A stretch of 64,000 bases of DNA from Bispira polyomma (taxonomy: Eukaryota), in the NCBI GenBank assembly GCA_965649765.1, contig OZ287749.1, positions 51,522,001 to 51,586,000 of the forward strand. The letters are read 5' to 3'. Numbering within the stretch: position 1 is the stretch's first letter; each line of letters begins with the position of its first letter. This document shows positions 19,225 through 56,500 of the stretch, in pieces. The translations under genes and the position numbers were made by a program. Below the pieces are notes generated by a model that had not been told where the DNA came from, did no database searches, and was given only the letters and a program-made list of their open reading frames with translations.

Positions 19225-20256
19225 CCTCATTGTATATTGTGTATATCTTATCATAATGTTAAATATCATAAATATAAATAAAATACAATTATGTGAAAAA
19301 TATGACTTTATTGTTCTATGTATGGTAATATCACATCATCTGCGCTAAGTGAAACCAACCCACCAATAAAACATTAGTTAGGAAAATTAGTTCGAAAAAG
19401 CCTTAAAATTGGGTAAAATTAGACCATCGCCTTGCAAACCTACACCCCCTAAGGAATCTTTGTACCAAATATGAACTTCCTCATTCTGATCGTTTCTAAT
19501 AACTAGCCGTGATAATCTTTGGCAGTCACCACCTGCCCAGGTGCCCATCTGGACAACCTAGGTGAAAAATAACCCATGGCCTACTTATAGGCTGTGGCAT
19601 ATAAAAGGAAAATAAATGTAAAATATGAGGGAAATGTTGCCTAATTTAAATGTAACAGGATCTTATGAAGATATTTTAAATCAGCGAATACTTTGTAAGT
19701 TGAACTTTGTACTAAATCATTTTTAGCCATTTTCAAGAATGAGCTTTAATTGTAAAAATTTAATTTCTATGGCAAATTAAAACTTTTGCTAATCTCTTAA
19801 GTAAAAATTATTTCTCAGTGAAGTTAATTTCCAGTGGGTCTTTTGAACCTTTGCAAGGCTACTGTGGCTGTCGTGTACTCTTTTTGTTTAACACAGTAAA
19901 CATATATACAACCATCTTGTATTATCATACCCACACCAGGTTGTGATATTACCACTTGGTATATCTTATCAGCCACAACCCATGCACAGTACACATTACA
20001 ACAACCAACCAATAACCAACAGTTATCTTGACCTTTTTGAACAGGCCAAATATATACATGTGCTTTTCAAGGTGCCACAAACTATAATTCTGTTTTTTCA
20101 ACGTGAAAGGTGTGTTTACAATATTCACCCCAGTATAATTTTTGGCCTCTGCCACAATATTATAGTTCGTCAATATATAAAGGAAACAAACAGCTAATGA
20201 AACACAGCCAGTGTTAGACCAGTGCATATGTTTCTGCAATACAAACAAGTATCAAT

Positions 20257-27671: not shown

Positions 27672-27998
27672 AATACCTTGTTATTGTCTGCATGTATATG
27701 TTACATATGGACTATTTAATAGTTTAATAGAGCTTGAGTGTTTGATCAACACATACTGGCCTGGATCGGACTGCTTCGGATTAAAATTACACCTGGTACC
27801 CTACTGTATAGAAAGAAATTGTCCAGTAAATACACGTCATTAAAAGAACCATAAAAGAAGTGGTTTGTAAGAACAGAAAACAGTTACAAAACAGTGTAGG
27901 ATAACTTTCCTCTAAAAGCATATACTACTTGGTACTAGACGTAAAACAGGGCCTTTTGATATTCTTGTGTTTTCAAGGCCCACCAGAAAATCAATACT

Positions 27999-30900
27999 AT
28001 GACCAAGTACTTTGGAGTAGACTGGGCCCCTGTGTGGGTCCCCTTCGAGAGACGTCTGCAGACTGCAGTAGTGGCACTCTACTGTGCCACTTTCCTGATC
28101 TTCCCAATCGTGTGTCTGGTAACCTGTGTGCTTCTCTTGTTCACACCACTATTTTTTGTCAGTGCTGCCTACATTGGGTGGATGCTGTATGACGTGGGAT
28201 TCCGACACACCTCCAGTAGGGGTGGAAGGAGGTGGCCCTGGTTCCGAAAACTCTTTGTTTGGAAATATTTCAAGTAAGATTTTTTGTTTTTTGACCCAGC
28301 AGCCATATAATTATAATATTGATGGCTTTTAAATTTGTATTGTATTTAAATCTGACATTCTGTACTATCTTTATCTCCTATTAAAAGGTGCTATAATTAA
28401 TAAAACCTTTTCTTGACTGCCAGAGCATACAGTCAACTGTAATGTTCTCTTATGAATAACTTCAGATAAACTCTGATTGATTTAGATCTAACCAAGACAT
28501 TTAACTACACATTAAAGTGCTTTAAATAAGCTGCTTTATTTCCCAGAATTCTCAGACAATAACCCTTACCATAATGCACACATATATACCAAATACTGTA
28601 TGTTGACATAATAACACTACATCAACTAGCACCTGCAACTGTCATTCCTCTTCCTAAAGAGAGGCTTGGGGGATGTAGTCCATAAGTAGTCCACCAGCAG
28701 TCCATCAGCACCACTAAAACTGTCATATTATTAAATGAAGAGAGAGGCTTGAGGATGAACATTTATCAAGATCCTTAAAGCAGATAGGCAATTATTTTCA
28801 CCAAATGCATGAAACCTATAATATTTAAACTGGTTTGTGTACTTATACACATTTCTCAACTCTTTCTTGTGAAAACACACACACCACAGCAGATAGTTGT
28901 CTTTTTATTTCCACTGTAGAGAAATTGGTTTGTTTTTCTCCTGGAAAGCTCTCTCAGCTGTGTGACATCATTATAGTCAGGGGGATTTTATATACAGATT
29001 CTGTGTATGCAGTACTCAGGTATGCTGTATAATATTGTAGATTTATGGAGGTAATTTTTAATATATTTTGTACTTGTATACTAATGTTATAAAGTGTTTT
29101 TTTATCAATTTTGCCATAACACATAACATAAGAATAAAAGTGCAACTGGCTCACTTTCCCATCAATTTTTGTTCTGATGAGGAATTTAGTGAAAAAGCTT
29201 TCAGGGAGTTTTAAAATCTTATTGTTTTGAACCCCCCAAATCAAATCCATTACATCAGGACTCTTGTAGTGAAACAACTTCAGAAAGCGGTGAAAATGAT
29301 CAGATTCCAGCTTAATAAATCTAAGACAAAACAGTCTAAAAATACTGAATGCTCCTTGTCGATGAGGTTATTGAAAATGGTTCATTTAAATATCATCTGT
29401 GTTGTGAGTGGAAATCTTGCAATATTTAATTTGTCATGCAGTGTAACAATGTGAGTGCCTGATAGAATGAAAGTTATAGAAAGTAATAAAAAAGTAATAG
29501 ATAAAATCTATTACCTTGCAATCGATTACTATTACTATTACATTTCAAATTTTGAAATCTATTACTATTACTTTGAAATTTCAGCAAATCTATTACTTTT
29601 CTATTACTTCTCTTACATCGGCCCCTACCCTGGTACACACTAAGGTTATAGTAATAAACAGCCATATTATCACAAAGCTTTTATTCTTAGAATAGTTTGG
29701 GTTATGTCTGATGCAGTATTTTAAACACTGGTGATATTAAATGTTTTTACATTGTATAAATATATAAAAATGCTAATAATGTATCAAAATATATGTGACT
29801 ATGTGTATATACAAGGTAATCAGCTTCTCAACGATAACTTTTATGAGTTATTCACTATCATGATTTTTTAACAAACAACATTTTCAAAAATAATAAAATA
29901 GTTGCTATTTATGTTATTTTAATATTTAAATACCTCAAATAGCTTTAATTATAGTATTAAAAATGTAACAATTCAGTATTTTTAACTCATAGCTTTCTGT
30001 TCAAACTGTGCGAGACACGTTTTCATATTTGTAATTATTTCACTATGTCAATTGTTATCAAAAACTAAATTTAAGACCATTACAGTCATTTTTACAGTTA
30101 CATATATAAATAATTATGTCATCTTTTCAGAAATCTTGTGGTAAACTTTGATAAAAGGATTGACAGTTTTCCAATATCTTTAAAAAAACCTTGTTATTGA
30201 GCAACATTTGTAATCCTTTATGAGCCCTAGAGCCATTCACTATCCAGTCTTTGTCACTGAGTGGGCCATGAACACAGATTTTTCAGATCTAGAATCATTT
30301 TTACAGTCATGGACAAAGCAGTATATAATTTTAATTTGTTTTTATATTATATTAACTCCAATAGGGTGGAACAAGTAACAACCCAGTATATATTCTGTAT
30401 ATCTAGTACATGTAATATGTAGATAGAGATGTGTGTATAAATATATACCTCAATGTTGAGTAATAATCCATTAAAATATTAATATTTATACAAGAAACTT
30501 TACAGAAAACTAGCAGTGAACTGTTTTGGTATATAACAGCATATGTATCCATAAATTTAGAGAGATAAATAAAAGAGAGAGAGGGGAAGGAATTAAATTA
30601 CACTATATATCAGTGCATGTACAGTGTACTGGTGGCTATACTGATGTCATATCAAAACATTGCCTGTTTGAGCGGGAGAGATGGATCATTTGTAAGATTT
30701 GAGATAAAAAGCTCTAGTTCTACACATACTAGAGGGAGTGGGAATGTGTGTTGTATTGTAATCACCATCATTTATTTTCTATTTTAAAATATGCTAAAAT
30801 AGTTTTTCTTGCCTATCTGCTTTAAGTTTTTTTTTAGCCTGCCACTGTTGATAGAACCTTAATTATGACAGAGGGTCACAATTTTAAGCGCTAATCCGAG

Positions 30901-33900
30901 CCACTATGTATTTACCTATATTTGGTCGCCCCAGACTGGGATAAAAACCCAGGTCCTGTGTGTTTCTGATGAATAAGTGTGTTACCCACTAGACTATACA
31001 GTGGCAGGATATTGCCTGGCTATGTCTGTCTGGGAGATGATACATGGCCATGTCATGAACTACTTCTCAGAGGATGTCAGGGGTCTTGGTTATTCGGTTG
31101 GTCACATACTAACCTCCCACCTCTGCTGTCATGGATTTGAATCTTAGTCCTGGCGTGTATGTGGGTGAGTCGGCAGGAGATTTGCTAAAGGCCGGTGGTT
31201 TGCAGAGCAGAAAACCTTGGTCAACTACCCCTGCTCTAATTTTTCCTCTCCTAGTGAAGTGTCTGTCGTGATAGGACATAAAACTATGCTTTATCTATGC
31301 TCGTGAAAACTCTTGTAAGTTATAAATACAACTACATGTACCTCTAACCATTGCTTACAGAGACTACTTTCCTGTGGAGTTGGTGAAAACTACCGAGCTG
31401 AGTGCTGACAAAAATTATATCTTTGGTTACCACCCACATGGAATCCTCAGCTGTGGGGCTCTGTGTAACTTTGGTACAGAAGCCACTGGGTTTTCACACA
31501 TCTTCCCTGGCTTGACACCACACCTCATGACACTAAAAGACAACTTTAAACTGCCTTTTATCAGAGGGCCACTCCTCTGGCAAGGTAAAGTATACCACAG
31601 ATATTACAAGTTAGTGTGTATGATAAACAGAAAAATAAATAATTGGTGTGTGGTCTTGTAAGACACAGTGGTTAGGGAGTTTCTCTAGGAACTGGCGTGT
31701 CCTTGTTTTACTAAACTGGATATGCCTAGTCTTTCTGGTTTATCACTGCATGTATGTCTCATTTCAAATAGTAGGAAAGAGTCTTGGAGTTTTAACTCAT
31801 CTCATCTCGTGAGTCTCCGGTTTATCTCCAGACACTTTGCCACAGATGCAATAAATATGTCAAACTGTTCACAAAATCCGTGGTCATAGCTAAAACGTAG
31901 CATGGTTTCTCCCAAATGGATGCGCAAAAAAAATTAGGAACCTCCATGAAATGATTAAGCAAACTTATGAAACAAAGAGCCCCATTTGAAATGAAATGAA
32001 AATGCAATAGGAACTTTGTTAAAGCGCACTTATACAACACAGGGCCGTTTCAAATGCGCTTCCTTATTGGCAACAACTATAGGCACCGAGGCTTGCTTGA
32101 GGATGACCATTTATCAATTTCCCCAAGGATCTTTAATCTGCCACTGGAGATATTACTCAGTGACAGAGGACCACCATTTTAAGTGGTCATCTGAGCCACT
32201 AGGCAAACTTGTGCTCACATCTTACCCAAGGATGTAATCCCACCAAATGAAACTAGCGGCTGGTACCGGGAATGGAACCGAGGACCTTCTGAGCATCAGA
32301 CCAACAGCCTAACCACTAGACTACGATGCCGCCACCTAGGCGAATAATTATGAAACAATGTGCAACGTTTTAATCTGTCTATTTCTGATTACAGTCAAAG
32401 TGTCTTATAGAACCTTGTAGAAGCATGATGCCATCAAAAGCTTACATGTGTCTGGACAGATGTTTTCTTTAAAATTTAATGAATTCCATTTACTTTAATC
32501 AATTCCATTCGCTAGTTATTTAATTCTGCCACAAATCAATCGAACCAGACGAATACTTGCCAGTGATTATGATAATAATATAAACACAGAACTTTTGGTT
32601 AAAGTTATTATAAATACAAGTGCCTTTCAACCCCAAGAAAAACCTATCGTCAGGAACTGAAGGAAATTTTAAGGTAATAGGTTACAGATAGCTGAAGTCA
32701 CTAAAACACACACCACAGACCACTTCTGGCATTCAATAATGGGCTTATGTATCATTTTTTAAACAAAGAAGTCTGCTGTAGTAACAATTTCCTATGGCGA
32801 AGAACTGACAAAAAAAAAATAATATATTTTTGGGGTGTCGACTGCTTGCCAACAGACTTAGGTTCTTGGAGTATTAAATGCCATTGAATGCTTTCCAACA
32901 ACACAGGGGTCCATAGGGTTAAAAGCATGAACTAAAACTGATTAATATATTATCTTTTAATATGTACTTACTTTATTTACTCTATTGCCTCTATTAGGGG
33001 TCTGTGATGTCAGCAGAGAAAGTATCCAGTGGATTTTAACCAAGAAAGGTACAGGGAATGCGGCCGTCATAGTAGTGGGTGGTGCTGAGGAGTCACTGCA
33101 GGCTAAACCCGGCATCTATACATTGACATTGTTAAAAAGGAAAGGATTTGTGAAACAGGCCATCAGAGCAGGGTATGGACACCTTATATTACCATTAAAG
33201 TGGAGTCTCTATTATCTAAACAATGAAATTTAGTTAGAGTAATAGAAAGTGGTTTATAAAATAGAAGATGCAGTATATTAGTACAATATACAGCCAAAAA
33301 AATGAGAATTGTCACGTCATATATTGGTACCAGTAAAGTAAAACCTACCCACCTCCTGTAATCAAGCAATACATGTCACTACATTTATGTACTTTCTTAT
33401 AATTTCTGCAATTGGACATGTTATTTTCACACATTTATACCACTCAAAAATGTGTCCATTTTTGTCAAACAAATGTCCACCATCTTGGAAACTATATGCT
33501 AATAACAAATGCAGTAATGGGTACTGGTAAAAGTAAAATTGCTCTTTAAAGATACATCCCGCAAACCTAAAGTTAAAACTTTCGAAAGTGATATATTACT
33601 GCTAACTTTTCTGCATACTTACAGTGCATCGTTAGTCCCCATCTTTTCGTTTGGAGAAAACGACTTGTTCCAGCAAGCAGAAAACCCAGCCGGATCCAGG
33701 CTCAGGAAGTTCCAGGAGAAGTTCAAGGAGATGGTGGGTGTGGCTCCACCTGTATTCTACGGACGCGGGGTGTTTAACTACACTTTTGGACTCTTACCAT
33801 ATAGGCTACCAGTACATACAGTGGGTAAGGACTTTTGTAAGGCCATAGTGATGGCAGACTGATTAACAGCTATATGTACCAATCAGTGCCCCACTTTGTG

Positions 33901-36812: not shown

Positions 36813-39800
36813 ATGGCACCTGGTGTTACTAGATGTGTACAGATTGTCTACATACTTTGCTTTTGTATTGGAACAGTTTTGGGGAAATCAATTCTCGGAA
36901 ATCATCCAGAAGATGTCAAGTCTAATCAGTTGAAAAGAAAAGCAGACAAACTTAGCAAAAAGGAAAACTTTGTTGATTATTTACAGAAGCGAGGAAAAGG
37001 TAAGTTAATGTTACCTTTTTAAAAATATTTAAGTATTATTTACAATTTTTAAAAGTTAAAAACATTTTTTGGTGACAGCAACTAAGTATACTCTTTCCAT
37101 ATTACAAAAGATTCAAGTCTACATATATCAATGTGGAATAGAAAGTATTTATTGCTAAGTAAGTAAGAATTCATTAATTATGCTTGGGGAAACCATGTTA
37201 CAGTATAATCTCCATATGGTGAATGCTCATGGAACCCAGCCCAAATGTTCACTGTAAAGAGGTGTTGAGTATTTGGAGGTTATGTATAATTCACTGGCGG
37301 AAAAACTGAACCAATTACGAGGTTCACTATATACATATATATATGGAGGTGTGCACTACTCAGAAGTTTTCACTAATGGAGGTTTTACTGTATGAAATCA
37401 TATAATACCGCTCTTTGCAGTGTATTTAGTGAGAGAATAACTATTAGTTTAATTTGGTAGGTCTGATTTATATGTATTGATGCAGATAGTGATTTCAAGC
37501 TATGGCCATTTCAAAATGACACTACAGTCAGGAAATGGTTAGTTAATGTGTCCATACACACTTACAAGAAAGCTAGGTTCATGTATGTCAATACATTATG
37601 GCCTGGTCACACCTAGACGTGTTAATGTCCCCCAACGTACCTAAGCAATATACACTGAAAAAGGTGGTAGTGTCAAAATGACGTCATTTCCATAAAGGGG
37701 TAGTCAATTGTTTTGTGACGTTTCGAGGCAATGTTGGTTCTTGTGCACACAGAGCGGGGGCAAAAATCGAACACTTTACTGGTAGGATATCACTACCTTC
37801 TACTACATAGATCTACTTTACTGCTACTTACTGGTTCATTCTGTTGCCTTCTACTACTGAGTGAAACATTTTTGACTAACAGAGACGAGTGGAGATGATC
37901 TCACTACTTACTGTGACTTCCTCGCTACCTACTACTATGCAGAGCTACTTACTGATATGTCTATGCTACTTTCGGAAATGTTCTGGGACAAACAGAGAAA
38001 CGTGGAGAAACGGGAGCTGTTACACAATTGTTTGAAACAATTTTAAACAAACGTCGCAGCAGACGAAATGGAGACGTTTTGGGAACGATATCATCTGTTA
38101 ACCAACGTCACGGAACGAATGCACCAGGGATCCTCACTTTTGCATTACCTTCTACTACGTTTATACTAGGTTTCACCTACACGTAGCTCCAGCATGTGTA
38201 GGTGTGACCAGGCTTTTCACAAGGATATGGCCATGTGCCACTGTCTAACAGGTTCAATGAAAGGTGAAAGCTGTTGTGACGAGATGATGTATTATTGAAT
38301 TATTTACTCTTTTGTAACCTTACATCTCCTGCACGGAAAACACTGGTTTATCATTTCATAATATTTTATATGGGGATATATAGACAAGTTGGACAAATTA
38401 TACACACAATTCTTATTTAACAATGAAACACAAGTACTGTAAACTATGAGCCTAATGAATAAAGATTTAGCCATCATATTATACAGTTGGTATGTTTAAG
38501 GCTCTCTAAAAGGATTTCCATAACCAAATTGATCAGATTCTTAAAGTCAAGGTACCCTACCTACATTGGTGGGGTAAATTGTATTTTAAACAACATAAAC
38601 TGATTAATTAAGATACTGTACTACCTTTAGAGAATGAGTTAGTATATTCTGGGGGATAGTTAAAGACATCAAATGCATCAATCAAGCAGGCACTGAGTAT
38701 ATAGAGGTCATATCAATATGTTAGTGTATTTCTCACTTGGCGCTTGTATCTTTTCTTTTAAAATACGTCTTTTGCTTCATGTGCATTACTAAGCCCCTAT
38801 AACATTAACATATAATTGTTTTGCAAAAAATGTGTACTTCTCTGTTAGGTAAAGTCAGCTGGAAGGAATGTGACGTGGATGATGATGTCAGACTGGACTG
38901 TGGTTTCTATGGTGGCACAGAAGAAGAGTGTTACAAACGGGAGTGTTGCTGGGGTCAAACCAGTACACCTGGAGTACCCTGGTGTTATTATTCCAAACGT
39001 GAGTTCACCTGATTATAAGAACAAATGTGACTTGACATGGTTTTAAATGGCAGTTGACGGTTTTTGAACAATCGTGGAATGATGTGCATTTTGTTAAATG
39101 TTAGTTGACAAGCTTTTTAACCTTGGTGTAAATTTTAATGCAAAAACGTGAGTGACATGTACAGTGTTTTTTAAAAAAAATAACAGGTTTAAATTGACAT
39201 ACATGTATTTTTTTTAAAAAGTAAGTTAACAGGATATTAATGGAGCGGAATTTTTAGACAATACAATTAAAAAATGCCTATACCAAAAATAAAGGTATAG
39301 TTTTTGTAATATACTACAAACGATTTGTGTGGTTTAATATTTTTGTAAACTTGCTATTTTGTGTTATTCACTTCATGTACTAAACCCAAATAATATGTAC
39401 CTGAGATAGGCGGGTAGAGGGGGACACAATTAAGCAATCTTCGATTCTCTTGTTATTAATTAAAAAATTATTATAGTATTGTAATAGTGTTTTATGCTCA
39501 TGCAGCGGTTGTAAATGTGTGTTTTTAGCCACAGTAACTCAGGAATGTGCCATGCATTCCAAAGAAAGAGTTGACTGCGGAACTTATGGGATCAGGAAAT
39601 CTCAGTGTCTGTACCTTGGTTGTTGCTGGCAACCTATCAATGAAAATGGCATCCCTTGGTGTTTCCATGAGAAAAGTGGGTTTGTTTACATTACAACTAC
39701 TTAAAACAAAACTTAACTGTCATGAGATATATACTCTATTCTAACATAACATGGCTGTGTCCGCGATTCTGATTGGCAGACAGCTTCGGTAAATATAACC

Positions 39801-42800
39801 GTATACCCATAAACGGAAATAGAGTAATTTTGTCTGTAACATACTGGATGCCTAGTAAATATAGTTCCTTCAATAACGTAATTATGCAGTAAAAAAAAAA
39901 GTTGGAATCAGGTAATAATTTTAATTTGTCATATTACTATAGGAATAACTCATGACAAAGCTCAGTATACAGTAATTTTTACCACTGTTTGAGTGTAGAG
40001 ACACTCAATCTTTGCCTTTGTGTTACTACGCCTCCAATTGTGGTAAAAATTAACGTATACCGAGCTCGAGTTTTGTCATGGGTTATTCCTATATGACAGT
40101 ATAGAGTAGCTGACTGAATGTCTGAAAAAAAATTGATTCATATATAGTGTATTCTTGTAGCGATTATGTAATTATTAAGATGTATATGATGTAAGGCTTG
40201 TCACTTCTTTCTGAAGTATCTTGTTCTACATCATAAAACCATGATCATACAAAGAATTTCTTTGGTATTATTATACATGCTTTGTGCTAGAAAGTTAGAA
40301 CTAAATAATATATATTTGGAGAAAATCCAATTTGTTTGTTTATAAATGGTAGGGATAAAGTTTCTGCCATTTCATATGATCTTGTTCTTATTTACCTACA
40401 CATTAAAAGAAGAAAAAGCATACTAACGGAAAGTTGACTATGTAATATACACTTTCAATATTTATAAAGTTAACATCATTATATCAGTTACAGCAATTTA
40501 TTCAAAAAGCACAAATCCATTGAACAGCGTTGATGTACAGAAGGGCAGATTCAGGCATTCCCCCCCCCCCCCCCCCGCCCCCGTTTTCTGGGACTGTGGC
40601 ACTTTTGTGACAGGTATGCACTCCACAGAGTGCCCGTCATAACTGTTAGGTTTAAGTGTTGAGATTTGTGGCCATATTCCCTGAGAACATTCTTAAGCTC
40701 AACTCAGACTCAAGCTCAGACGTAAGACTGCATATTTGAATTCAGCCCTAAAAGCTCTGTTAAAATAAATGGTCACAAGTACAAGTTATTTCCACTATAT
40801 AGAATGTAGTAAGCAGTAGCCTGCTATTTGTACATACTTTCAGAGGAACCAGTACAGAGTGGAGAGTGTGGAAACCCTGCCATCAGTCCCAGTGTGGCTG
40901 GGAGGATTGTGGGGGGCAACAGGGCCAGACCTCACAGCTGGCCTTGGCAGGTAAGTTTCTCATAGATATGGGGAGGAATTTGGTACAAACCTTACAAAAG
41001 ACAGATGTAATTTTCCAAATGGACAACTAAATGACTGAAGATGACCATTTAAATATCCCTATTTAAGGATATACTAATCTAATCCTAGACTAGTACTAGG
41101 CGCTATATCGTCCCTATAAGAAAACTCAAAGCTCCATAGCATCCTAACCAAAGACAAATTTCATAATGAAGAGGACATGCATAGTCAAAGTGTGTATGGA
41201 AAACTGGACTTTGGGATAATTTCAGGGACATTTAGAAAATTATGATCAGGCTTATTCATATGAGTCACTCTAATGTCTAATTTCTTTGAGGAAAACTGGT
41301 TGGCCAGAATAGTACAGAATTGGGGTTCTGAAAATATATCTTTAAGACTACAGATACAATTGAAACGTTGTTATTTTCTCCACTAAAACAAATGGTCTTT
41401 AACTTTTAAAAAATATGTATAGTTATATTTATACATGTATTGTCTTATAATGCCCCACACAATTATGTCATTGCACATGTACTATTGTTTACAGGTGAGT
41501 CTTCAGTCTGGTTCTGGTCACTTCTGTGGTGGAAGTATCATCGACCCACAATGGATTGTATCTGCAGCCCACTGTGAACCAGGGTATGTATTTTAAAAAT
41601 TACTTCAGTGGAACCCCTTTAAGTAAAACTCTGTTAAGACATTTTTCCTGTTATGTGGAGACAAATTTGAAGTCCCATGAAGGCATTTTCCTTTCAAATC
41701 TACCCTGTTAAGTGGAAATCTTGTTTAAGTAGAGGTATTTCTCCTGCTCCTTTGAGTTTTGACTTGAATGGGTTCAACTGTAGATGTACATTGTATAGAT
41801 AATATATACATACAAAGTCAAAGTTTAGGGTTTTACATCCCGCTCAACAGCCAGGGTCATATTGGGACAGGCCCACAGCATTTGTCACTTATGGGAGGCG
41901 AACCCACACAGAGGTGACAGCCTGTGATTAGATGCCAAACTTCCTAACCACTCGGCCACTGAGGACCTCTATATATACATACATATACTACTACTTATTT
42001 GTGTTGGAAATGAGAGTAAAACATAACCACTGGGCCAGCTCCCTGTCTACAAGCATGAAATACATTTAACCAGTTAATGGCAATTACTGTACTTCATTTT
42101 GTACAAACACATACAAAAAACACACAAGACAGGGTTCCCCACAGATACTTTGAAAGGTACATATAATAATCAAATTTAGCTTATAAATTGAATTCTAATG
42201 TAAATCATATATTGCTAACATTAAGAAAAATATGTACATTTTGTTGAATTTGTCATACAGTTGTAGAATGTAATATGGGAAAAATTACAGATTTTGATTA
42301 GATTTTTGAAAGTTCCATGACTTTTCCATGACTTTTTAAATTCCGTGACTTTTCCAACTACCACTTTGGTTTTCCAGGCTTTTGGTAACTCTTTCAAATG
42401 TCACCATTCATTTGAATAGAGCTTTTGACAAGGAATCCCTAATATGTGCCGTCTGATTTAAGATAATTGCCATATACAAATAGATAAACTTTATAAAACT
42501 TTTTCAAAACTAAATAATTTATTATTTGTGATTCTATTTCTCAGCTTTGAGTGGTATGGTGGAGAAAAGTTTATAGTTGCCGGTGTACACAATTTAAAAG
42601 AAGAAACCAGTGTGTATCAGAAAATTGAAGTCGAAGAACTTCTAGTGCACGAAAACTATGATGAATATGAATACGATGAAGACATCATGTTACTGAAATT
42701 AAAGAATCCAATCCAGTTCTCGGATGAAGTGTCCCCCATCTGTTTACCAAACTCAGGAGAGGACTTTGAACCTGGATTGAAATGTTACACCACTGGATGG

Positions 42801-45800
42801 GGAGATTTGGAAGGTAATAATACAGAAGAACCTCTATTATCCAAACTTTTATGTCTAAATAGTGGATTTTACCCTCCTAAATTTAAGTTTTCCTATTGCT
42901 TTACACAGAAATGGGTCTTCTATTATATGAACTTATCCAAATAAAATCTTGCACTCAGAGCATGTTCAGATAATAGAGGTCTTTACTATATACCCTGGCT
43001 GTGTCCTGAGTTAGAGGAGTTCTCACAAAAAATGTCAATATATGACGATGCATATTGTGAATACAATAATGCAATACAATTTTTAAGTGGCGTTCACACT
43101 GTCCGCGTTCTCGGTCCCGGTCTTCCCCCGTACTGACAATGTGTGAAAACTTGTACAAACGTTGGACAACTGGGCATAAATGGGGGTGGAACTTGGGCGA
43201 ATATGGGCGAACGGCAAGAACGGGAGCTGCAGCCGGAAATTTTGAACATGTTCAAAACTTCTGTGGGAGGACCGCTTTGAAAACCCATCTTGAGAGAACT
43301 TGGGAAAACTGCAGGAACAGGGCATAAACGGGAGTTGCACTGCTCAGAACTAGTGTAAATGGGGCTTAAACTGCTCAGACCTGGCCAGAACTGGAGAGAG
43401 CTTGAGAAAACATAACATAACCCGGGCATAAACGGGGCTAAAACGGGTCACAAACGGGGGATGCAAATATATGCAAATAAACATTTTCCCACCTTTTCTC
43501 TCCCGATCAGCCAAGTACATTCTTCAGGTCTTGAGTAAACGGCTAGCCGGGGCTATGCCAGGGCGTGAACTTGGAAAATGTGAACGCCCCTTTAGACACA
43601 GTACGGATCAATATGATGTTTTAGGTTTAACATTGCTTTCAACACATCTTGTAATATATCATGATGTTCAGTTCACTGTTAATGAAAATGAGAGCAGGGT
43701 ATTTTGTGCTCTGTAAACTACTGCTATTGAGCAAGTCTGTTGCCAACCTTTCTCACATACATGTCATGGTTAAGATTCTAACCTATGATTGCAGAGGCGG
43801 GTGTATACTACCACTACCTCACAAAAGCCCCCCCCACCCCCTCCTCCTCCCTATTATTGTATAGCAGTTTTTCTTTTCTCCAAACGTGGTTCCAGTTTTA
43901 TAGAACTTTGTATTTCTCCATTTCAATCTCATTTTATTTCTGACTCTATTCTAATTTTCGTCATTTTTACAGTTTGTTTACTTTCATGCAAGATCACTGC
44001 TTCCAATGTTTACTGCACAATGGACAGAAACTCACTTGATATTGAAATTTGCATTTTTTTTCCAAATGTACATTTAATGCAATTATGATTTTTAGACACA
44101 GTACTACCGACTACAATAACTTGGTTCAGTTTGGGTTAAATGTCGTTTTCAACACATTTTTTATCATATCGTGATGTTCAGTTTACTGTTAAAGAAAATC
44201 AGAGCAGGGTATTTAGTCAAGGTATTTTTCCCCACAAACCATCATCTTTTAGCAAGTCTACTGCCAAATTTATCACATACACGCCAGCACCAAGATTTCA
44301 ACTGACAATGGCAGAGCTGAAAATCGAATGTGTTACACCACTGAGGCCCCTGTGACCCCTTTGACAGTTTTATAATAATGGTACTAGTGTATACAGTACC
44401 AGAAATATACTTGCCATAGGTCAGTGGTTTGCACTGGTTTACAGTGCTTGAGCACCAGTTTCTTGTACAATTAAATCTGGCAGCTGGTGAAAGCGAGGTA
44501 AAACCTAACTAAAATTCAAATACAGTATAGTGGAACCCTGGTAAGTCGAATCTGAAGGGATCATAAAATATTGTTCCACTTAATAGGCATTCTACTTAAC
44601 AGTGTCAAGAGTCATCAGAAAAATAGTAATGGGATCTTAAAGTTAACAGGTAAGTCTACTTATCAGAGTTCTACTTAAACAGGGTTTGACTGTACATTCT
44701 TTTTTTTTTTGTTATGTTTTAGAGGGAGGTGTGAGTCCAGACATCTTACAACAGGTAATGATTCCCCTGATAGAGACTAAACACTGCAACAGTAAGGAAT
44801 GGTATGACGGCCAACTCACCGACAATATGGTCTGTGCAGGGTATGAAGAGGGAGGCAGAGATTCGTGTCAGGTAGGCTCAGATATGTATTCTCAACTTAA
44901 ATCTAGGGTGGGACAAAGTAAATGTGTAGGTGTACAGTCTATACATCACCCCTTATGAGGTCTCATCTTCACAATTGACACTTTATGGTGGAATACACCC
45001 TAGTCTGGGTTCTTCCACTTTATCAAGCAAATATTCACGGAACATACTAGCCATGCTGGCACATATGATACAAAGACAAACACCCATTAGCAGCCAGATA
45101 CCTGTTTATACACCTGTATCGTAAGGGAAAACTTTGGGTGAAGAGTCTTATCTTAAGGGTACAATCTCTAGATTATGGGCCAAATACTCTTAACCAGTAG
45201 GCCACAGAGACCAATATAAAGCCTTAGTTATCTGAACAGCAATATAGTTGACAGAGCAAGTTTTTTAGACAATAAGAATTTCAACTGTATTTATCACAGG
45301 TGAAAGCTGTGGAGGAATGGAATGACATTAGTGTCATGTACAAGGAATTTAATATGGTATTCCCACAGTTTGCATAAGACTGGTTTTGAGTTTGTGTCGG
45401 ATTTGATCGATTTTGAACCGTTTTAACTTTTTTAATGCATGTTTTTATGCAGAAAAAAGGTCAAAAGTGTTCAGGTTCCAAGTGTATACAATTGTTATAC
45501 TCTAACTGAACAATAACTATAGTGACTAAGATGTTTTCCACAAAAAGTTGTGTAGAATATATATAATCTACATTTCTGCCTGATATGTTGTTGTTTGAAT
45601 AACCACATGACAATATACATCGTACTTTATAGGGGGACAGTGGTGGCCCAATGGTTTGCTACCATGACGAGAAGTGGAAGTTAGTGGGCGTTGTTAGCTG
45701 GGGAGATGGGTGTGCTGGCGAGAGAAAGCCAGGAATTTACACCAAGACAAGCAGATACGTACAGTGGATAGATGACAAGATGTCTCAGTACTCTCAAAAA

Positions 45801-45821
45801 CAGAAAAAGTTTATAGCCTAA
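36813..45821 (+). CDS. Secreted trypsin-like (S1A) serine protease zymogen with two N-terminal trefoil (P-type) domains (8 exons, 428 aa)
   Basis: Exons 36813-36999 (signal peptide and pro-region), 38849-38998 (trefoil 1), 39529-39675 (trefoil 2), 40844-40950 (CG..R|IVGG..SWPWQ), 41495-41583 (HFCGGS..SAAHC), 42545-42813 (DIMLLKL..PICLP..TGWG), 44723-44871 (MVCAG..RDSCQ), 45633-45821 (GDSGGP..VSWG.GC..PGIYT). All phases are compatible, 1287 nt. AATAAA at 45936. Confidence 0.9.
37600..38214. mobile_element. Harbinger-like non-autonomous element in protease intron 1
   Basis: TIR GCCTGGTCACACCTA(G)AC / GTGTAGGTGTGACCAGGC; left flank TTA; interior rich in CTAC/GACG motifs. Confidence 0.75.
39938..40093. 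repeat. Long imperfect inverted repeat (hairpin), probable end of a non-autonomous DNA element
   Basis: TATAGGAATAACTCATGACAAAGCTCAGTATAC..TTTTTACCAC / GTGGTAAAAA..GTATACCGAGCT..TTTGTCATGGGTTATTCCTATA. Confidence 0.75.
41815..41970 (-). mobile_element. Short tRNA-derived SINE family B (156 bp)
   Basis: Minus strand A box TGGCCGAGTGG, B box GTTCGCCTCC, CTTTGA-type tail; perfect 13-bp TSD ATATATACATACA (41802-41814 / 41971-41983). Confidence 0.9.
43086..43591. mobile_element. PIF/Harbinger MITE with TTA TSD
   Basis: TIR AGTGGCGTTCACA / TGTGAACGCCCCT; TTA on both sides; GC-rich interior; empty paralogous site at ~44077-44105. Confidence 0.88.
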
Positions 45822-46648: not shown

Positions 46649-48052
46649 TCAACACATCTTTTTAATTGTCCCTAAAACCACACTGTATGGAAAACCAAAC
46701 ATCATTCTGCCATCACACCACTCTGATCTTTTGTTAAAGTTATGAAGGGAAAACACAGGTTTCCTATACACTGTAGAGTCCCGCACACAAACCTCTTTCC
46801 GAGACATTTGCCTTTTCCTGAAGGCATTCTGGTACTCCACTGTAGGAATCTGCATTTTCACACAATCTTCAAAGCTCCAGTTGAATCTAGAGTTCCACTT
46901 AGATGGCTTTACAGTCATCACTTGTGGCATTAACTGTGTTATACAGTCTTCACTTAGTCTACTGTAATTCTTGTGGTCAAAGTTACATGTTTCTACTCTA
47001 TCACAAAGCATTTGACAGTATTGTGCCACACGATCGTTAACATACTTAAAGTGAGAAATTTCCCCTTGAATGTTATCTACATTGCTACTCAATATGTCCC
47101 TCAATTTTGAGTAAAAATGCTGATAAATATTGTAATCAACAGCAGAGAACTTGGCCAAAATGTTCCTCAAGTGTACATCATTCTCAGAACTAGGTATCAT
47201 TGTTTTATTAAAGTGTCTATCATTTCTCACATATAAACTGTGAAATACTAAATCTTTTAAACTCCAGTGTAGTCTCCTTTTCAGGATGACCAATGACTCT
47301 TCAAATAGTTCAGTAATCAATACAAAATCAATACTATCCTCCAGGTTAATCAGAAACTGCTGAATGCTACTCCTGCTATTGTCACTGATATTTCTATATC
47401 CATAATGAAATGCCTGTGGATTCCTGACCTTAGAGAAGAGTCTCCCACTAACTCTCTGATATATCTCCGGATTATTTTGTAAAAAGTACTCGATAGCCTG
47501 GTGTTTCTTTTTGATCCGGAATTGTTTATGTAATTCCCAGAATGCAAAAGTGGATCTCAACTGAGAGAGAGGTTCCCTCAAAATACCAATGGTTACGTAT
47601 CCATCCTGCAAGTAACTTCTGACCGCTCCTTGGTCATAAACACTGTGGTCACATATCATATTGTATGATTGAATATGGTTTTTATTATCCTGCTTTTCAA
47701 ACAGATATTTGTAGTGTGGCTTATACGGATAAGTCATTCCCCATGGGGTATTGTACGTGGCTACTCTCAGGTTATTATTCATAGCATAACGAAAGAAGAT
47801 GTTTTGAGCAGTTGAACTGCCCGTTTTATGAACTTTGATAAAGTATATGTCACTAACTGCACCAGTAGTTTGTGTGGGATCATCTGTGAAAGACTTGTTG
47901 TTTTGTGATGTACTCTTAAGCTCCCTTTTGTGAATTACCAATTTAACACTAACTTCCAAAGCCTCAAATATCAGAATTTTATTTCTCAAAACCAAAAATC
48001 CCCCAAGAACAACTAAAAATAGGAAGATATATTTAATCCCTTTATAATCCAT
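46649..48052 (-). CDS. Galactose-3-O-sulfotransferase (GAL3ST / cerebroside sulfotransferase family), single coding exon, 467 aa from the ATG at 48052
   Basis: Type II membrane anchor YIFLFLVVLGGFLVL; 5'-PSB FIKVHKTGSST; 3'-PB ILREPLSQLRSTF; VLITELFEESLVILKRRLHW; D-x-x-IY-x-HF. Confidence 0.92.
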   Translation of the reverse strand: MDYKGIKYIFLFLVVLGGFLVLRNKILIFEALEVSVKLVIHKRELKSTSQNNKSFTDDPTQTTGAVSDIYFIKVHKTGSSTAQNIFFRYAMNNNLRVATYNTPWGMTYPYKPHYKYLFEKQDNKNHIQSYNMICDHSVYDQGAVRSYLQDGYVTIGILREPLSQLRSTFAFWELHKQFRIKKKHQAIEYFLQNNPEIYQRVSGRLFSKVRNPQAFHYGYRNISDNSRSSIQQFLINLEDSIDFVLITELFEESLVILKRRLHWSLKDLVFHSLYVRNDRHFNKTMIPSSENDVHLRNILAKFSAVDYNIYQHFYSKLRDILSSNVDNIQGEISHFKYVNDRVAQYCQMLCDRVETCNFDHKNYSRLSEDCITQLMPQVMTVKPSKWNSRFNWSFEDCVKMQIPTVEYQNAFRKRQMSRKEVCVRDSTVYRKPVFSLHNFNKRSEWCDGRMMFGFPYSVVLGTIKKMC

Positions 48053-50573
48053 AGCAAAGAACACTAATATTTGAAATAAGACTTTAATAACTTCAAAAAA
48101 TAATTTTGAATGATTGTCAAATATGTTCTATTATTGCCCCGGCAATAGGAAGTGATTATTTAAAAAAATTTGCAAACTTTAATGCTTGTATGTACAAACT
48201 TTACATGCAATACACAGCACAGTCTGTGTTCTGTACATAGAATTAAACTGTAATGCAGGTTGTTCTATGCCTAAGGGCAATACATCAACAACAATGACTT
48301 GTTTTGTACAAGAACTCCCCCAGTGGTCAGTTGTATAGTGACTCAATTAAAGTGCTCATGAATAATTTAACTGAGATCGAGTATCTTTAGGTCAAATTCT
48401 TTTGGCATTAAAGTTATAAGTTATGCTATTAACTTCTCAGAATACCTTTTTGCTGACATAAACGCCTTGGAGGTATAGGTTATTATTTTCATTTTTTTAC
48501 AAAAAGGCGGCTATTCACTAGTGTAAACAGTGTTATTGGGGTGTACCTTAAATTAGGTCTACTTTTAAGCTGTACACAAAACTGGGTGTATTTTTCAGGA
48601 CAAGTTTCTGTAAATACAAAGGGCACAACACAAGTAATATGGCAGCTTAAATACAGTGGTTAAATCCATGTTTGTTTACATTCTCAGCACGGCAAACATA
48701 TATAACATTGTTGTATTCAAGTTTGCTCAGAGAATACTAAAGATATGAATTTCACTGGTGGTATTTTGTCAAGTTAATGTGAGACACTGGGTCAGATCAT
48801 CTATTTTATCCCAAAAATGGTGTAATATTAAGTATCATATTTTTAACATGGATATATGGCAGGAATAAAAGGCATTGCAAAATTTACTGAATTAAAGTAG
48901 GATTGTACATTTTGCAAAAATGTCTATATTGTGTCTTTGTCATTAACCTGCATTGCTCTATAGTTTGTTTGTTTTTAAAATGCACCTCATAAGATCAATT
49001 ATGTGGTGTAATTTATATTGAATGAAAGAAGTACTGCTGGATTGTGACTAGGTATTTAACTACAGTATCTGCTGAAATATTACCATTCAGTGATCTAAAA
49101 TCTCTTTAGAAGAATGAGCGAATATAATTAAAAGGTAGGGGGCTTAAATACAGGGAATACAGTATATTCTATACAAGTAAAAATGGATTTGATTCTCAAA
49201 TTAAACATTTTGCCTTTTTCAAAACTTATAAATTTAAATGGACTTATACCAGTACACATGGAGTACAATGTAAGACTATTAAAATATTTTACACAAGATA
49301 TTTTTGTAAAATTAGTTTGTGACATATTTGACTGATCTTTGCTACCTGAATTTATGTTTATATTATCTCACACAACTGCTAGCCTGAGTGCAGTCTAGTC
49401 TTGCCCACCTTATGAAAGCTAAAAATAGAACAGCATAAGATTCCTATCATAGCATTTAATGTCAAATGAAATTAAGAAACTCCTCTTGAAAATCAAGACT
49501 TCCAGATAAATCAAAACAGACATTAAAGATCTAAGTTATTTGAGTCCACAATAATCAATATAAAAATTGATCTAATAAAAAGATTGTTTGATAATTTTAT
49601 ATTACCACGGTCTTATTAAAAGTATGTGTACCAATTCAAGTTAGAGTGACAAGAGAAAAAAATCAGGCAATATTCTTTTAGTTGCGCGGACAAAATAACG
49701 GTGGACAAAATACCGGTCAAATTTAACAAAATGCCAGCCGAGTTTCTTTGGAGTTCTTTGGTACACTTTTTTTGTATTTTCTCTGGTGGTTGTCTGTGGG
49801 TTGCTTAAAGTAAAATAGTAGTGACCAGTGTTAAGAAGGCCAAACCATTAAGCATGCCACAAAAGTGTCTGAAGTCTTTATCTTTTTTAGAGATCTTTTA
49901 GTCCAAGCCCTTGACCTTTGCGCCATGTAGTTTTAAAGTAAAGGAATTTGTGTAAAATGGTAAAAGCATAAAATTGTTTATAGTATTGTATCACAACATA
50001 TTTTTTTTGCAAATATAATATGATGACATTGTTAATAGTACTGTTTTATCAAAACATTAGTTGTAAATATAATGTCTTTGAAATGTTTTAATGTTTTGAC
50101 TACTGGCATTTTGTCAACCCACCCAAAAAATCGGCCGGCTTTCTTTCGAGTTCATATTAAGTATCTATTGCTTTGTAACTGAACACAAAAACAACAACTG
50201 ATACTTGCTTACTTTATAAAAATACTATATTTTTCAGTAAAATATTTTATTCTTGAGACATATTTAGACAGCTTTTTTTTACAAATGCCATATGCTTCTT
50301 CACAAATAATTTCAGCGTTAATAATTCATGCCACAATATCTACATCTAGTTACATATTTTTAGAATAATAAATTTTATCTTTATCTTTTATATACAACAA
50401 TACACTAATTAAACATCTCTATTTTAACACAAATGACTTAATATAAGAAATCTTATATGCTATTTTAAAAATCAAATGCTAACAAGAAATAGAATTATTC
50501 AAAATCTCTCTACATATAGTATATAACTTCATTACAGATTGTCCTTGATTTATTCACTTTACTTCTGCCAAAG

Positions 50574-53500
50574 TTACTGACAGTTTCTATTTTTAGAAAC
50601 TCCCTCTGTGTTGGGATCAAACTCTGCCTGGCTGATGTAGTGACTGTAGAGGTAACAGTTACATCCGTACCAGCGCTCGCGGACACTGTAGGCCATACAG
50701 TAGCCCCAGGGATGGTCTTTGAGGCACAGAGATTCACACCTGTCAATAAATGCACATCTTAGTCAATACAAATTAAAGATTGGCTGGTACTTGGTTTAAT
50801 TCAGTGTTTTGGTGGTCATACCATCATCTAGCAGTCAGGGAAATGGTCTTTTAATCAAAAGGTCTTTGGACCGACTCCCAGTAAATTGATGTTTCTTTGT
50901 CAGTTTTTAACAAATACAGTGATCATTAGAGGATAACATACTCGGGCAAGATATGAAGAAATGAATTAACTTCCAAAGAGAAGCAACACATTGTAATAAT
51001 AGGATTGTTACTTGTTGGTAAACAAGTACTTTAAATTAACCATTGTTAATAAGTAAGTATTCATAAATCATCAGATTTCTGTGACTGACCCTTTCAGTTC
51101 TATTTGAGATATGTCAGAAACAAATCTCAAATATAAGAAGGGATAAAACAGTACAAGGCCACTGATATTCTTCACTACAAAAGCAAATGAAGACATTAAC
51201 AAATTAGGTAACATTACTGTTTATTTGTGACTTATATTTTCGTTTGTGGGACGCACTAAAACTTCAAACTTCTGTCAAATATTCTACTTTATCAACTTTA
51301 AAAAATTCATGTGTTTCCATATTTTTTAACCAATTCAGTTTTGTTTTAGTTAGTAGCCCTCTATTATGCGAGTAGGATGTTCTTGCTCCAATTGATTATG
51401 ATAACAGTGGTCTTACTGCGATTTTAGTTCTTTAATTTTCTATATGTTAATGGCACCTCGCTTTAATTCAGCTTTAATTTGAATGATACTACTTCCGAGT
51501 ATGAAAATACGTGTTTCTAATAGAGGGGGCCAGCAGTCTCATATTCTTTAAAATTAAAAGTAAAATTGAATCACAGACAAAAGTCTGCATGCCATAAACA
51601 ATCATTATGGGCTAACAAATGTTAAACCTTTGAGAATTATAAATTTTATGTTAACAAAGCACAATCAATAAAAAATACTTGTAGATTACACTTACTTGGT
51701 TTCACACCCGATCACGAACCACTCCTTATCACGATAATCTTCATGTACGGCCTGCTTTCCGACCATATGAAACGTTTCATCCACTGCGCAGGGAGTATTT
51801 GCTGGTAAAAAAGGCGGTGAGATATTGTTACATGTCAAGTAGTGGGTAAAAATATACACATGCTAGAACAAAGTTATTTTCTGTGTGATTATTATATATT
51901 TAGGGGCGAATAGACCTGGCCGATTTTGCTTCCAAATCTGTCATGCGATTAAAGTAATTTTAAAGTAGTAAGATTATTTCAATGACTTTACTCCTTCCTG
52001 CGTCCTAGTGGATATGGAGTTGGTCTGGTGATAAGAAAGTCCCTGGTTTTACCCCCCGGTTAGGCGAGCTGGTCTGGTGATTGGAAGATCCGGATTGGAA
52101 GGTCCTGTTTGGCTCACCTTCGACTCCCGCTAATGCTGATTGGTGGGATAACATTCTTAGCCAATGTGTGACCACACCATATTGCCTATTGGTGATGATT
52201 CAGGCTTTGTCGTAGGACTATCCCTTTAGAGAAAGAACTCCTTAGAGGATGATATGCTGTATAAATGCTTCAGTAATAACTAGCATATTTTCTTGTTAAA
52301 AAAAATATTTTAAATTCCAATACTGACAATAACATAATTATGCATATTGTTGATGTAATTCCGAAGTTAGATGCTGAAATTGTGTCATAATAGTATTTCA
52401 GATTCAGTTTATTCGACAACATTTATTTCTTCAACCATTTAAAATAACTTAGATAAGCTTATGCAGACACTAATGAACATCTATTGTGCTTTTTAAATGG
52501 CATTGGTCATCATCAAAAACAAAATTGTGCTCAAAAAACTATACTTTCCCCCGAATGTAGTGTAACTTACTACCGTGCTACTCATTTTTCCTTCAGTAAC
52601 CTTAAGAGAGGAAAGAGAGTCTCAGTTTCCTCTGTGGGATCAACCAAGAGGGCTGGATCTAGAGTTTTCTCAAATGCTGCCCCTATATTATGGAATAGTC
52701 TCCCAGTTGAGCTTAGATCACTAGAAACACTATCTGGGTTTAGGAGAAAACATAAAACCTATATTTTCAACCTCCCTTATCCCCTTTAATTCCCTCCCTG
52801 TAGACCACAACATCCTTCCTTATGACATGGCTATGTTTAGGGACTTCTTCTTATATGAAGATTGAGAGGAGTAACATAGCTCCACTGAGGACTATTTTAT
52901 TTTTATTGGGAAGTGCGATATTAAACTATAAATCCATACTCCCTCAGCCACTTTTTTTTTACATTAAACCTATGTTAAGAGAAAATGTTTTATAAAGACT
53001 ACTATTTATGCTTGCACACTTCACTCCTCCTGGTCTTTATAGACGAGTTTAATTACCTTTACTATCCAAACATGTCAGCAAAGCAAGATTTTATTTAGTT
53101 AACAGAAGGTTTGTAAAACAGTAGAGGCATTTCAGTATTAAACAAGAGGATATTAAACATTTGTGAGAGTAAAAATTAGTTCCAAAAATCAACTGTTCCA
53201 ATAATACATTTGTAGAAGTTTGGACAACAGAGGTTATACTGTAATAATCTAATAGGGGTACTTACACTTCCCGCAGGCTACCAGACAAGTGTGTTCACTT
53301 GGGAACTTGTTGTCATTTCCTTCACAGCCTCCATAGGTGAACTGTTCACAGCGTCTTGTGGCAGGATTGTAGTACCACAGACGGATGTTAGCCATACAAC
53401 TACCAGTTACTGGGCTCAGAGAACAGATGTCTTCTGTGGATTTATAGCAAATTTTGCATTAAGAAATGTAAACAAATACAGTAGAACCTCTATTATCCAA

Positions 53501-56500
53501 ACATGTTGCTAGAGCAAGATTTTGTTGAGATAATAGAAGGATTAAGGTTTTTAAAAGAGAATAGGCATTTTAATATAAAACTATAGAAGAAAATATTTGG
53601 AAGACTGAAAATGAGTTCATAAAAATAGAATATTCAGGTAACAAAAGTTTAGATAATAGAGGTTCTACTATATTGAATCAGTCAGGACATCGTATTTAGT
53701 TGTATTCGTTTAGCGAGATTGCCAACAGTATCATGATGAACCTCTTCATCATTCACAGGTAATGCAAATTAATGGTCATCATCTTCTAAGATACAGAAAT
53801 ACAAGAGAGTGAAACCCCTTTAACTGTGTTAATTGTACTTCTGTGTTCTGTGGAGGAAAAGATAGAGCTCAACCAGAGCATTGTCTTTTAAAATGTACCC
53901 TCTTAAGTTTAGAAGTCCTACTTAAATGGAGGCATTTCTTCTGAGGTGATATTTATTTAAACTTTCAAAAATCTCAAAAACCTTTTGAATATGTCCCATT
54001 ATATCTTTGTGTACAAGAAAAATATCTAAAATCTGACTGCATTTTAAAGTTCCTCGCTGAGAGCTCGATCAAAATGTCTTGTTTAAATTTGCAACTTTTG
54101 ATAAATGCCAACTCTGGTCCTGTCAGATCTGTGAGATTCAACCAAAAAGGGTTCAACTGGATCGAAACGAATCACTGGATTTGGCAAACGTCTACATAAC
54201 GCTGAACCATAAGAACAACACTTGAACCCTAAGGCTGTGACAGTAGGGAGAATCACTTTCAACATGGCCGTGCCCTGTCCAGTGAATTGTAGAATTTACC
54301 CTTCAACTGTGTGATTGTTTTACCTGATGAACATGTACGAATACATTCATGCTCTGTAGAGAACCTGTTCCTGCTTCCTTTACATCCCCCATATATAAAT
54401 CGCTCACAAGTACCAGTTGTATCATTGAAATACCACTGTGGTATTTTAGCCCTACATCTGCCAGTGGCTGGAGGTTGTTTGCACACATCTGAAGAGACAC
54501 ATGGTTTCCAGTTTAAATACAGAAATACATAATTAAGACATTAATTTTAATCATTCTCAAAAAGTTACTGCTTGTGAAAACCATTTTACGAAAAGTTTGT
54601 TGCTACAGATATTTTTGTATTGTGGATTTTTAAGACTTACATCAGATTTGATAAACCAATAATTACCATTGTAATACATAACCAAATGGTCATCATCAGT
54701 AGACATCACTGTCCACCACGATCTTTATGGTGTTACTATGAGTTGAAGTGGGGAACCTTCTGATCATAAGACTATTCAGTACTTCCACTATTAACTATTC
54801 AGTTAGCTTGTGGACATTCAAAGTGCTAATCAACCTCTTCTTGACTGTCCGAGTATAACCAACAAGCACCAGAGAAAAGCATTTATCAACATCCCCAAGG
54901 TTCTTTAACCTGCCACTGGGGTATTAAAATCCAATAACTAGGGACTGCAATTTTAAATGGTCATGCAGGTCACTACGTATTTGTCTGTATGTGGTTGCCC
55001 GAGACTGTGCATGAACCTATGTCCTCTGCATTCTTAAGCGAGTGTATACTACCCAAATTGCCACAGTGGCAATGCACTGGAGGAATGTAAAACATGATAA
55101 TTGGTTCATCAACTGCTCATCGACAGACACAGTTCACTGGACTAGAAACTTCTATCAGCTGTTAGTTGACAAACAGAATAAAGACGAGGGCAACAGGAAG
55201 TAAAGTAGAACCTCTATGATCCAATCAAGTTTGGAGAGCAAGATTCATCAAATAAAAGAGGCCTTTTAAGATTAAAATATAGATAAATATAAATTTGGGA
55301 GAGTATAATTATGTGGTTAATTGAAATTCAGATGACAGAGGTTCTACTGTAAATTTCAGTGGATGTTCTTTCACCTAAACATGTGTCCAAACATCCCTCT
55401 TGTGTGGGGAATCTATTCCTGCTTCCTTTACATCCACCGTATATAAACTGCTCACAAGTACTAGTCGTATCATTGTAATACCACTGTGGTATCCTGGCCC
55501 TGCAGCTGCCAGTAGCTGGAGGTTGTTTGCAGATTTCTTCAAAACAATAATGATGTATCATTATGTGGTGGTGGTGATTTTACAAATTATTAAGAAGTCC
55601 ATCTCTATTTAGATCACTTATGTTATGTTACAATTACCAGTACTCTTAAAAACAGAAATTTGGACCTGAAAATGACTTTTGAAATGGATTTGCTCATATC
55701 AATGACATTTTCTTATACATGTACATTACATGTCATGTGGTTTGTTTAAATTTTATACATGTAATAATTTATACCAATTAATTAAATAGATTATTACAAC
55801 AAATGTGTACATGTTGGTAATAGTAAGTTCATTTTAATATTTATTTTAACAGGATAAACTAGAGTGGCATCCACTGTTGCATTTTAGCTTAGATTTATAA
55901 AACTTGCACCTATTGTTTTCGCTCTGACCAGATGTTTCATGTCTTGAATCATTTGAAAATATTCAACTTTTGGAATAATTTTTTACTTAGTTTGCTGACA
56001 TTTAGTGTATCAATCTTTCTTGAATCTATCTTCAACTGAACCAGCATTTTTTAGTATAAATTTGAAATAATTGATAGCAGGCAAGCTCTTTATTTATAGG
56101 CAGCCGTCTGTGATAATTCAAAATAACAGTTATCTTCAAATTCAATAGGTAATTTTTTTGACTGTTCTTCATCTGGTCCAATAGAATCGTTAAACTGAGG
56201 AACCACATCTTACCTCTAATTGTATTTAAAAGACCAGCATCCAATATAGGCTATTCTGAGTCATTGATGAGATTTACCTTCCACAGAAGCCACAGTTCAC
56301 AATTTTTTAATCGAAAGAAGAGTTTAGAAAGGGTACTATAGTTATGATACTACCTTCAAAAGTAGTGTGGCCTGTACAGACATGTAATTGAGTCTTTGAT
56401 GATACAGTAGAACCTCTTATTATCTGTTTTACGGACCTTCTATTATCCAGACAAATTTTCACTCTCCCAATATGGTCGGATAATAGAGGTTCTATTGTAT

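Follow-up and report, generated by a model that had tools for sequence, protein, structure and literature searches.

Does a single gene of Bispira polyomma encode two trefoil domains and a serine protease in one polypeptide, as the original prediction held, and what would the trefoils do for such an enzyme? We analyzed a 64,000-nucleotide stretch of the genome (the window), from which N is absent. The candidate gene spans positions 36813 to 45821 on the plus strand and comprises eight exons, with every intron bounded by GT-AG and intron phases of 1,1,1,0,2,1,0. Spliced together, the exons form a single 428-aa frame with its sole stop at the end, and poly(A)-type signals lie 3′ of exon 8 at 45932 and 46167. 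Exon 1 (36813 to 36999) encodes a predicted signal peptide (approximately aa 1 to 24, assigned from hydropathy and the phase 1 donor) and a basic pro-segment that terminates in a KR site directly before trefoil 1. Exon 2 (38849 to 38998) and exon 3 (39529 to 39675) each carry one trefoil as a phase 1-1 module. Exon 4 (40844 to 40950) encodes a chymotrypsinogen/plasminogen-type linker with C170 (Cys1) and the activation site R182↓IVGG; the original prediction had placed the exon 3-exon 4 junction at 39675/40844, exactly where our model has it. The remaining plus-strand exons are exon 5 (41495 to 41583; C208-C224 loop and catalytic His223), exon 6 (42545 to 42813; catalytic Asp273, C293, which corresponds to Cys122, the interchain partner, and C307), exon 7 (44723 to 44871; C338, C354, the S1 residue Asp363, equivalent to Asp189, and C365), and exon 8 (45633 to 45821; catalytic Ser369, G390 and G400, at positions 216 and 226, and the stop).

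The trefoil cysteines, at 70/80/90/95/96/108 and 119/129/139/144/145/157, follow the proposed spacing C-x9-C-x9-C-x4-CC-x11-C exactly in both copies. Pfam Trefoil (PF00088) matched the two domains with E values of 9e-15 and 6.6e-15 (54.7 and 55.1 bits; cut-off, 21), and these two exons outranked all others among the 33 trefoil matches in the genome. Pfam Trypsin (PF00089) covers exons 5 to 8. As had been claimed, the trefoils are spliced in frame between a signal peptide and an intact S1A domain: the triad H223/D273/S369 lies in AAHC, DIML, and GDSGG motifs, and the hydrophobic stretch at aa 1 to 29 and R182↓IVGG supply the signal peptide and activation site of an S1A zymogen. The S1 pocket residues D363/G390/G400 correspond to chymotrypsin 189/216/226, a trypsin-type set that includes the S1 Asp named in the original prediction. 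The protease has complete catalytic machinery and is predicted to have Arg/Lys specificity.

All 22 cysteines of the mature protein can be paired by chymotrypsinogen numbering, into six putative trefoil pairs, four catalytic-domain pairs, and C170-C293. Exon 4 resembles the linkers of plasminogen and chymotrypsinogen C, and in alignments C170 falls at Cys1 in chymotrypsinogen C and C293 at the cysteine of VCLP in chymotrypsinogen B; a linker Cys and a Cys122-type partner are present in every full-length family member. The original prediction had joined these cysteines, those of its ECGNP and PICLP motifs. Their positions and the pairing of all 22 cysteines agree with that proposal, and the C170-C293 interchain bond itself we infer.

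Database searches with the window gene were run exon by exon, and the joined protein was compared locally with the loci and proteins retrieved. For full-length candidates, ten trefoil exons were aligned to a natural 270-aa frame of the same genome that contains trefoils, and the natural full-length match was then used as the query. Among the matches listed, ten database proteins (P0159, P0172, P0175, P0180 to P0185, and P0297) contain Trefoil and Trypsin in one unbroken frame, none of them named; the check for trefoil presence left out P0034, P0044, P0088, P0089, P0127, and P0148. Eight of the ten lie on contigs of 1.0 to 2.5 kb, which from their size we take to be transcripts, and the remaining two, a tandem pair lacking coding introns, sit on a genomic contig of 22.6 kb. 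Among the 120 matches listed, no NCBI or UniRef protein had both domains. A HMMER search with exon 6 returned mostly multi-protease proteins, with close relatives appearing only as genomic exon fragments, and a word search with one trefoil matched the source sequence alone. In the Atlas, single-exon feature searches led to generic clusters, and a shape search gave no cluster combining both Pfam families.

Orthologues with identical exon order, phases, and 22 cysteines were found in two other assemblies (L057 and L058). The L057 gene is 83% identical to the window gene in the catalytic domain, 74% and 90% in the trefoils, and 58% in exon 1, with dN far below dS; for the trefoil 2 exon, at 90% identity, dN is 0.07 versus a dS of 1.2. 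The L058 gene is 64% identical in the catalytic domain and 62% and 65% in the trefoils. Both trefoils are evidently under purifying selection. In Capitella teleta, a laboratory model (L059; KB309179.1), the NCBI annotation has a partial 99-aa trefoil model that runs to 10297 and a trypsin model that starts at 10299. Rejoined from CAPTEDRAFT_87401 and the model next to it, the gene has an intact 399-aa frame with 22 cysteines and 53% identity to the window protein over 372 aa. Phase 1 introns flank each trefoil as in the window gene, the intron after WQ is missing, and the trefoil-protease intron (equivalent to intron 3) is only 52 nt. Capitella and several homologues have a KR/KK/RK-like basic site ahead of trefoil 1, and the phase 1-1 junction is common to six genes.

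That the window holds a TFF2-like peptide gene and a distinct trypsin gene, merged only by the earlier reader's model, is scarcely credible: the NCBI Capitella models are split, and poly(A)-type hexamers in intron 3 at 40402 and 40764 would allow a short trefoil-only isoform, but the ten fusion proteins are unbroken, the Capitella models abut and rejoin across the 52-nt intron, the phase 1-1 junction is kept in six genes, and no exon that could encode a signal peptide and splice through a usable donor occurs in intron 3. Separate genes were rejected on the unbroken fusion proteins and the rejoined Capitella frame, and a protease start inside intron 3 was rejected on the lack of such an exon there. 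Had the trefoil exons ended in a separate mRNA, the proposed architecture would have failed; the homologues instead carry both domains in a single frame. The fusion, as these genes and contigs attest, is real and old, conserved at least from a sabellid to Capitella, two sedentarian lineages. The original prediction, which knew of no characterized trefoil-trypsin, also stands on this point, with no description in the literature or databases searched; we found no account of the fusion in a literature search whose coverage excluded most subscription papers. We attribute the oversight of the family by databases to the fact that the sole annotated copy found, that of Capitella, is split in two. What had been missed was that this is a family, with paralogues of other specificity and a Capitella orthologue, and that a Kunitz gene is a conserved neighbor.

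By every feature examined, the predicted protein belongs to the peptidase S1A and trefoil domain families. With two-chain S1A zymogens (chymotrypsinogen A/C, plasminogen, and TMPRSS/hepsin/enteropeptidase) it shares the CG-x-P...R↓IVGG...HSWPWQ linker, the five-disulfide pattern, the triad, and the fold; those enzymes, however, have kringle, CUB, LDLa, SRCR, or ShK domains, whereas the window protein has two trefoils and no transmembrane anchor. A type II transmembrane serine protease was rejected, as the hydrophobic stretch is extreme N-terminal and no SEA, LDLa, SRCR, or CUB stem domain was found in the protein. Among TFF1 to TFF3, TFF2 in particular has tandem P-type domains like those of the window protein; these peptides are its best PDB match in sequence and structure, and the ligand Asp and Trp are kept. 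TFF2 differs in having a closing seventh disulfide, which is absent from the enzyme-fused window protein with its 12 trefoil-region cysteines, and in a CG(F/Y)-P-G motif where the window trefoils have CGx-Y-G. A TFF2 orthologue or TFF peptide was rejected, since there are only the 12 trefoil cysteines and the chain runs on into the protease. Structure was predicted for the natural homologue P0180 rather than for the window protein. The AlphaFold model (pLDDT of 83) has trypsin and trefoil folds; the trefoil fold gave TM scores of 0.71 to 0.75, normalized by target, against TFF1/TFF3, while the predicted trefoil pair packs unlike that of TFF2 (root mean square deviation of 11 to 12 Å).

Two further groups offer partial parallels. 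GH31 glucosidases (sucrase-isomaltase, maltase-glucoamylase, and GAA) likewise place a trefoil ahead of a digestive hydrolase domain, but they are glycosidases in which each catalytic unit has a single trefoil, a presumed (iso)maltose binder, whereas the window gene encodes a protease. Cnidarian ShK-trypsins and amphioxus CUB-chymotrypsinogens likewise join a lineage-specific small disulfide module to a chymotrypsinogen-like domain; the module is a different one, and they occupy another branch of the protease tree than the trefoil-trypsins. The trefoil-trypsin seems to be an undescribed architecture within a known enzyme class, peptidase S1A. Because S1A enzymes swap accessory domains routinely, we regard it as a variation on a familiar kind rather than a category of its own, one that adds the trefoil to the S1A repertoire of accessory domains.

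The same genome contains two tandem double-trefoil proteases on contig C10 (3,340,258 to 3,348,582 and 3,354,967 to 3,365,414). Their frames are intact, with 22 cysteines, matching phases, and one additional intron, and their first exons are candidates only. Position 189 is Ser or Gly in these paralogues and position 226 is Ser. A third, related C10 gene, at 3,283,737, has no trefoil within 20 kb upstream; this trefoil-less protease (G000:C10:3276391-3290184) has Ser189 and Thr226, and its candidate first exon is separated from its linker exon by a stretch that includes a reverse-transcriptase fragment near 3,280,900. The two tandem intronless copies on the 22.6-kb contig (L060, 3261 to 4454 and 10465 to 11712) are 92% identical, have Gly189, degenerate lectin residues, and a long branch, and are probably retrocopies. 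In a catalytic-domain tree, 15 trefoil-trypsins and three trefoil-less sequences grouped together with an SH-aLRT value of 94 (the tool's mark is 95), apart from the sampled vertebrate, amphioxus, cnidarian, and arthropod proteases; the tree was made by a quick method with a midpoint root and thin outgroup sampling, and it left out P0159 and five outgroup rows. Its simplest reading would be a single fusion followed by losses. Two members of the clade, P0193 and P0194, have an acidic Pro-rich segment in place of the trefoils, and their nearest relative is the trefoil-bearing P0185.

A three-Kunitz gene lies 4.8 kb downstream of the protease, at 50574 to 55540 on the minus strand, with Kunitz domains at 55379 to 55537, 54319 to 54489, and 53273 to 53431 and a last exon at 50577 to 50741; its first exon lies further upstream, beyond this span. 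That last, C-terminal Cys exon lacks a Pfam match, occurs once in the genome, and shares 55% identity with its Capitella counterpart. The Capitella orthologue has two Kunitz domains and is the next gene, 1.5 kb downstream of the trefoil-trypsin; in L057 a Kunitz gene is likewise adjacent. The P1 residues are R, R, and M in the window and R and K in Capitella, and a P1 Arg or Lys would suit an Asp189 enzyme. The relative orientation of protease and Kunitz gene differs between the window and Capitella. Other neighbors of the Capitella gene are not adjacent here: the counterpart of its receptor gene maps to the same chromosome at a distance of 5.7 Mb, and C4 carries the sole Myb-domain match. The flanks of L058 and L060, which are of limited length, and the surroundings of the C10 paralogues showed no Kunitz gene. 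We hypothesize that the Kunitz protein is the partner inhibitor of the trefoil-trypsin; the linkage itself may be a leftover ancestral adjacency. In the window, a single-exon galactose-3-O-sulfotransferase gene (471 aa, 46649 to 48064, minus strand) lies between the two; it is placed alike in L057 and is missing from the Capitella locus. Enzymes of the galactose-3-O-sulfotransferase type can sulfate mucin glycans.

A linked Kunitz inhibitor would fit a regulated enzyme. The protease might accordingly be nondigestive, whether as a lysin of sperm or egg coat, as a member of an immune cascade that senses microbial glycans, or as a processor of tube and mucus proteins. Two chains and recognition domains are typical of cascade proteases, trefoils are known in ZP1/ZP4, and the top structural matches of the P0180 model include enteropeptidase, matriptase, and prostasin. 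We nevertheless consider such a nondigestive regulatory role quite improbable. The diversified S1 pockets of the paralogues look like a digestive set, and several members are transcript-sized contigs from bulk or environmental samples, which suggests abundant expression. Syllid transcripts with the names "trefoil factor 2" and "serine protease 27," possibly members of this family, are upregulated anteriorly and in the proventricle (PMC6350857).

In TFF3, Asp20 and Trp47 are the sole side chains that touch the sugar, and their mutants lose mucin binding (PMC7221086). Alignment with TFF1 to TFF3 places D79/W107 of trefoil 1 and D128/W156 of trefoil 2 at these positions. The window gene, L057, and L058 retain both residues in all six of their trefoils, and eight of the nine Asp189 members do so in trefoil 1, whereas only 3 of the 20 other scorable trefoils of the genome have both. 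Elsewhere in the family, Glu often replaces Asp in trefoil 2, and the trefoil 1 Trp is lost in the C10 paralogues and the intronless copies; lectin activity would thus be dispensable in part of the family. Sugar binding by the window trefoils is likely on the strength of these residues, whatever the ligand. To our knowledge, GlcNAc-alpha-1,4-Gal, the TFF ligand, has not been described from annelid mucus, and trefoils elsewhere bind other sugars, such as isomaltose in GAA. A separate locus on C7 (L003, G000:C7:48595410-48598535, minus strand) has a long Thr/Ser/Pro-rich repeat exon with a terminal trefoil, with further trefoil exons within 30 kb; it is a candidate trefoil mucin gene of an annelid, recalling the integumentary mucins of frogs.

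The loss of lectin residues in several members, and the acidic segment that stands in for the trefoils in some of the clade, would be expected if the enzyme were a soluble digestive trypsin. Its trefoils would then be a protease-resistant stabilizing pro-domain or a binder of glycosylated food, with no tether to the animal's own mucus, in the way that the trefoils of GH31 glucosidases probably bind substrate sugar and not mucin. Against this, Asp and Trp survive at a much higher rate than in the genome's other trefoils, and the mucosal TFFs are the nearest solved relatives by sequence. We judge a soluble trypsin to be rather unlikely, if a serious contender.

On balance we lean toward a secreted two-chain zymogen whose trefoil chain, held by a disulfide, would tether the activated enzyme to gut or food-string mucin glycans. 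This mucus-tethered zymogen draws on the TFF-type Asp and Trp, kept far above other trefoils of the genome, on gut glucosidases that also have a trefoil ahead of the catalytic domain, and on the paralogue S1 switch and the Kunitz linkage; the host, a sabellid fan worm, is a mucus-using suspension feeder. Counted against tethering are the absent closing disulfide of TFF2, the different trefoil packing, and the three clade members without trefoils. The signal peptide would be removed, and the basic pro-segment probably too, at the KR site. A trypsin-like enzyme, possibly the trefoil-trypsin itself, would cut R182↓I183 and so activate the protease, and the two chains, trefoil and catalytic, would remain joined by the C170-C293 bond, much as the chains of chymotrypsin and plasmin are. 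The trefoils may act as lectins, using a TFF-type Asp/Trp cleft to grip mucin glycans of the gut lining or mucus food string, so that the mucus-held enzyme would digest food protein and escape wash-out. Non-trypsin specificities would come from the C10 paralogues, whose S1 residues are small, and the adjacent Kunitz protein may restrain premature activity.

If the trefoils bind mucin, this would explain how mucus- and deposit-feeding worms retain digestive enzymes, and it would allow one to ask whether the TFF lectin site is older than vertebrates. A broader proposal is possible but doubtful: an ancient annelid family of lectin-armed digestive proteases, both trypsin-like and non-trypsin-like, self-anchored in mucus by TFF-type sites and accompanied by a dedicated Kunitz gene since the sabellid-capitellid split. 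Were such a mucus-anchored family real, TFF-type mucin recognition would occur outside vertebrates, immobilizing an enzyme in feeding or gut mucus.

Upstream of the protease, the window contains two tandem DGAT2/MOGAT-type acyltransferase genes on the plus strand (approximately 20200 to 23500 and 27900 to 33900), the first with a Pfam DAGAT match. A tandem repeat with a period of approximately 396 bp occupies approximately 12800 to 14040, and one reading frame recurs in it at 12960, 13356, and 13752. A short interspersed repeat occurs at 41814 to 41970 (intron 5) and at 22776 to 22838 and is 88 to 91% identical to nonorthologous sites in L057. An Rfam scan of the window gave no match. The mitogenome in the host assembly (G000:C75; L048 and L049) is 15,503 bp, with 38.7% GC and the invertebrate code. 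One strand carries cox1, cox2, cox3, nad3, and a probable atp8, the opposite strand carries the remaining eight protein genes, and ARAGORN reported more than one tRNA-Met. The published mitogenome of Bispira sp. 2 is likewise 15,503 bp, with 38.8% GC and a two-strand split like that of C75 (PMC13602327).
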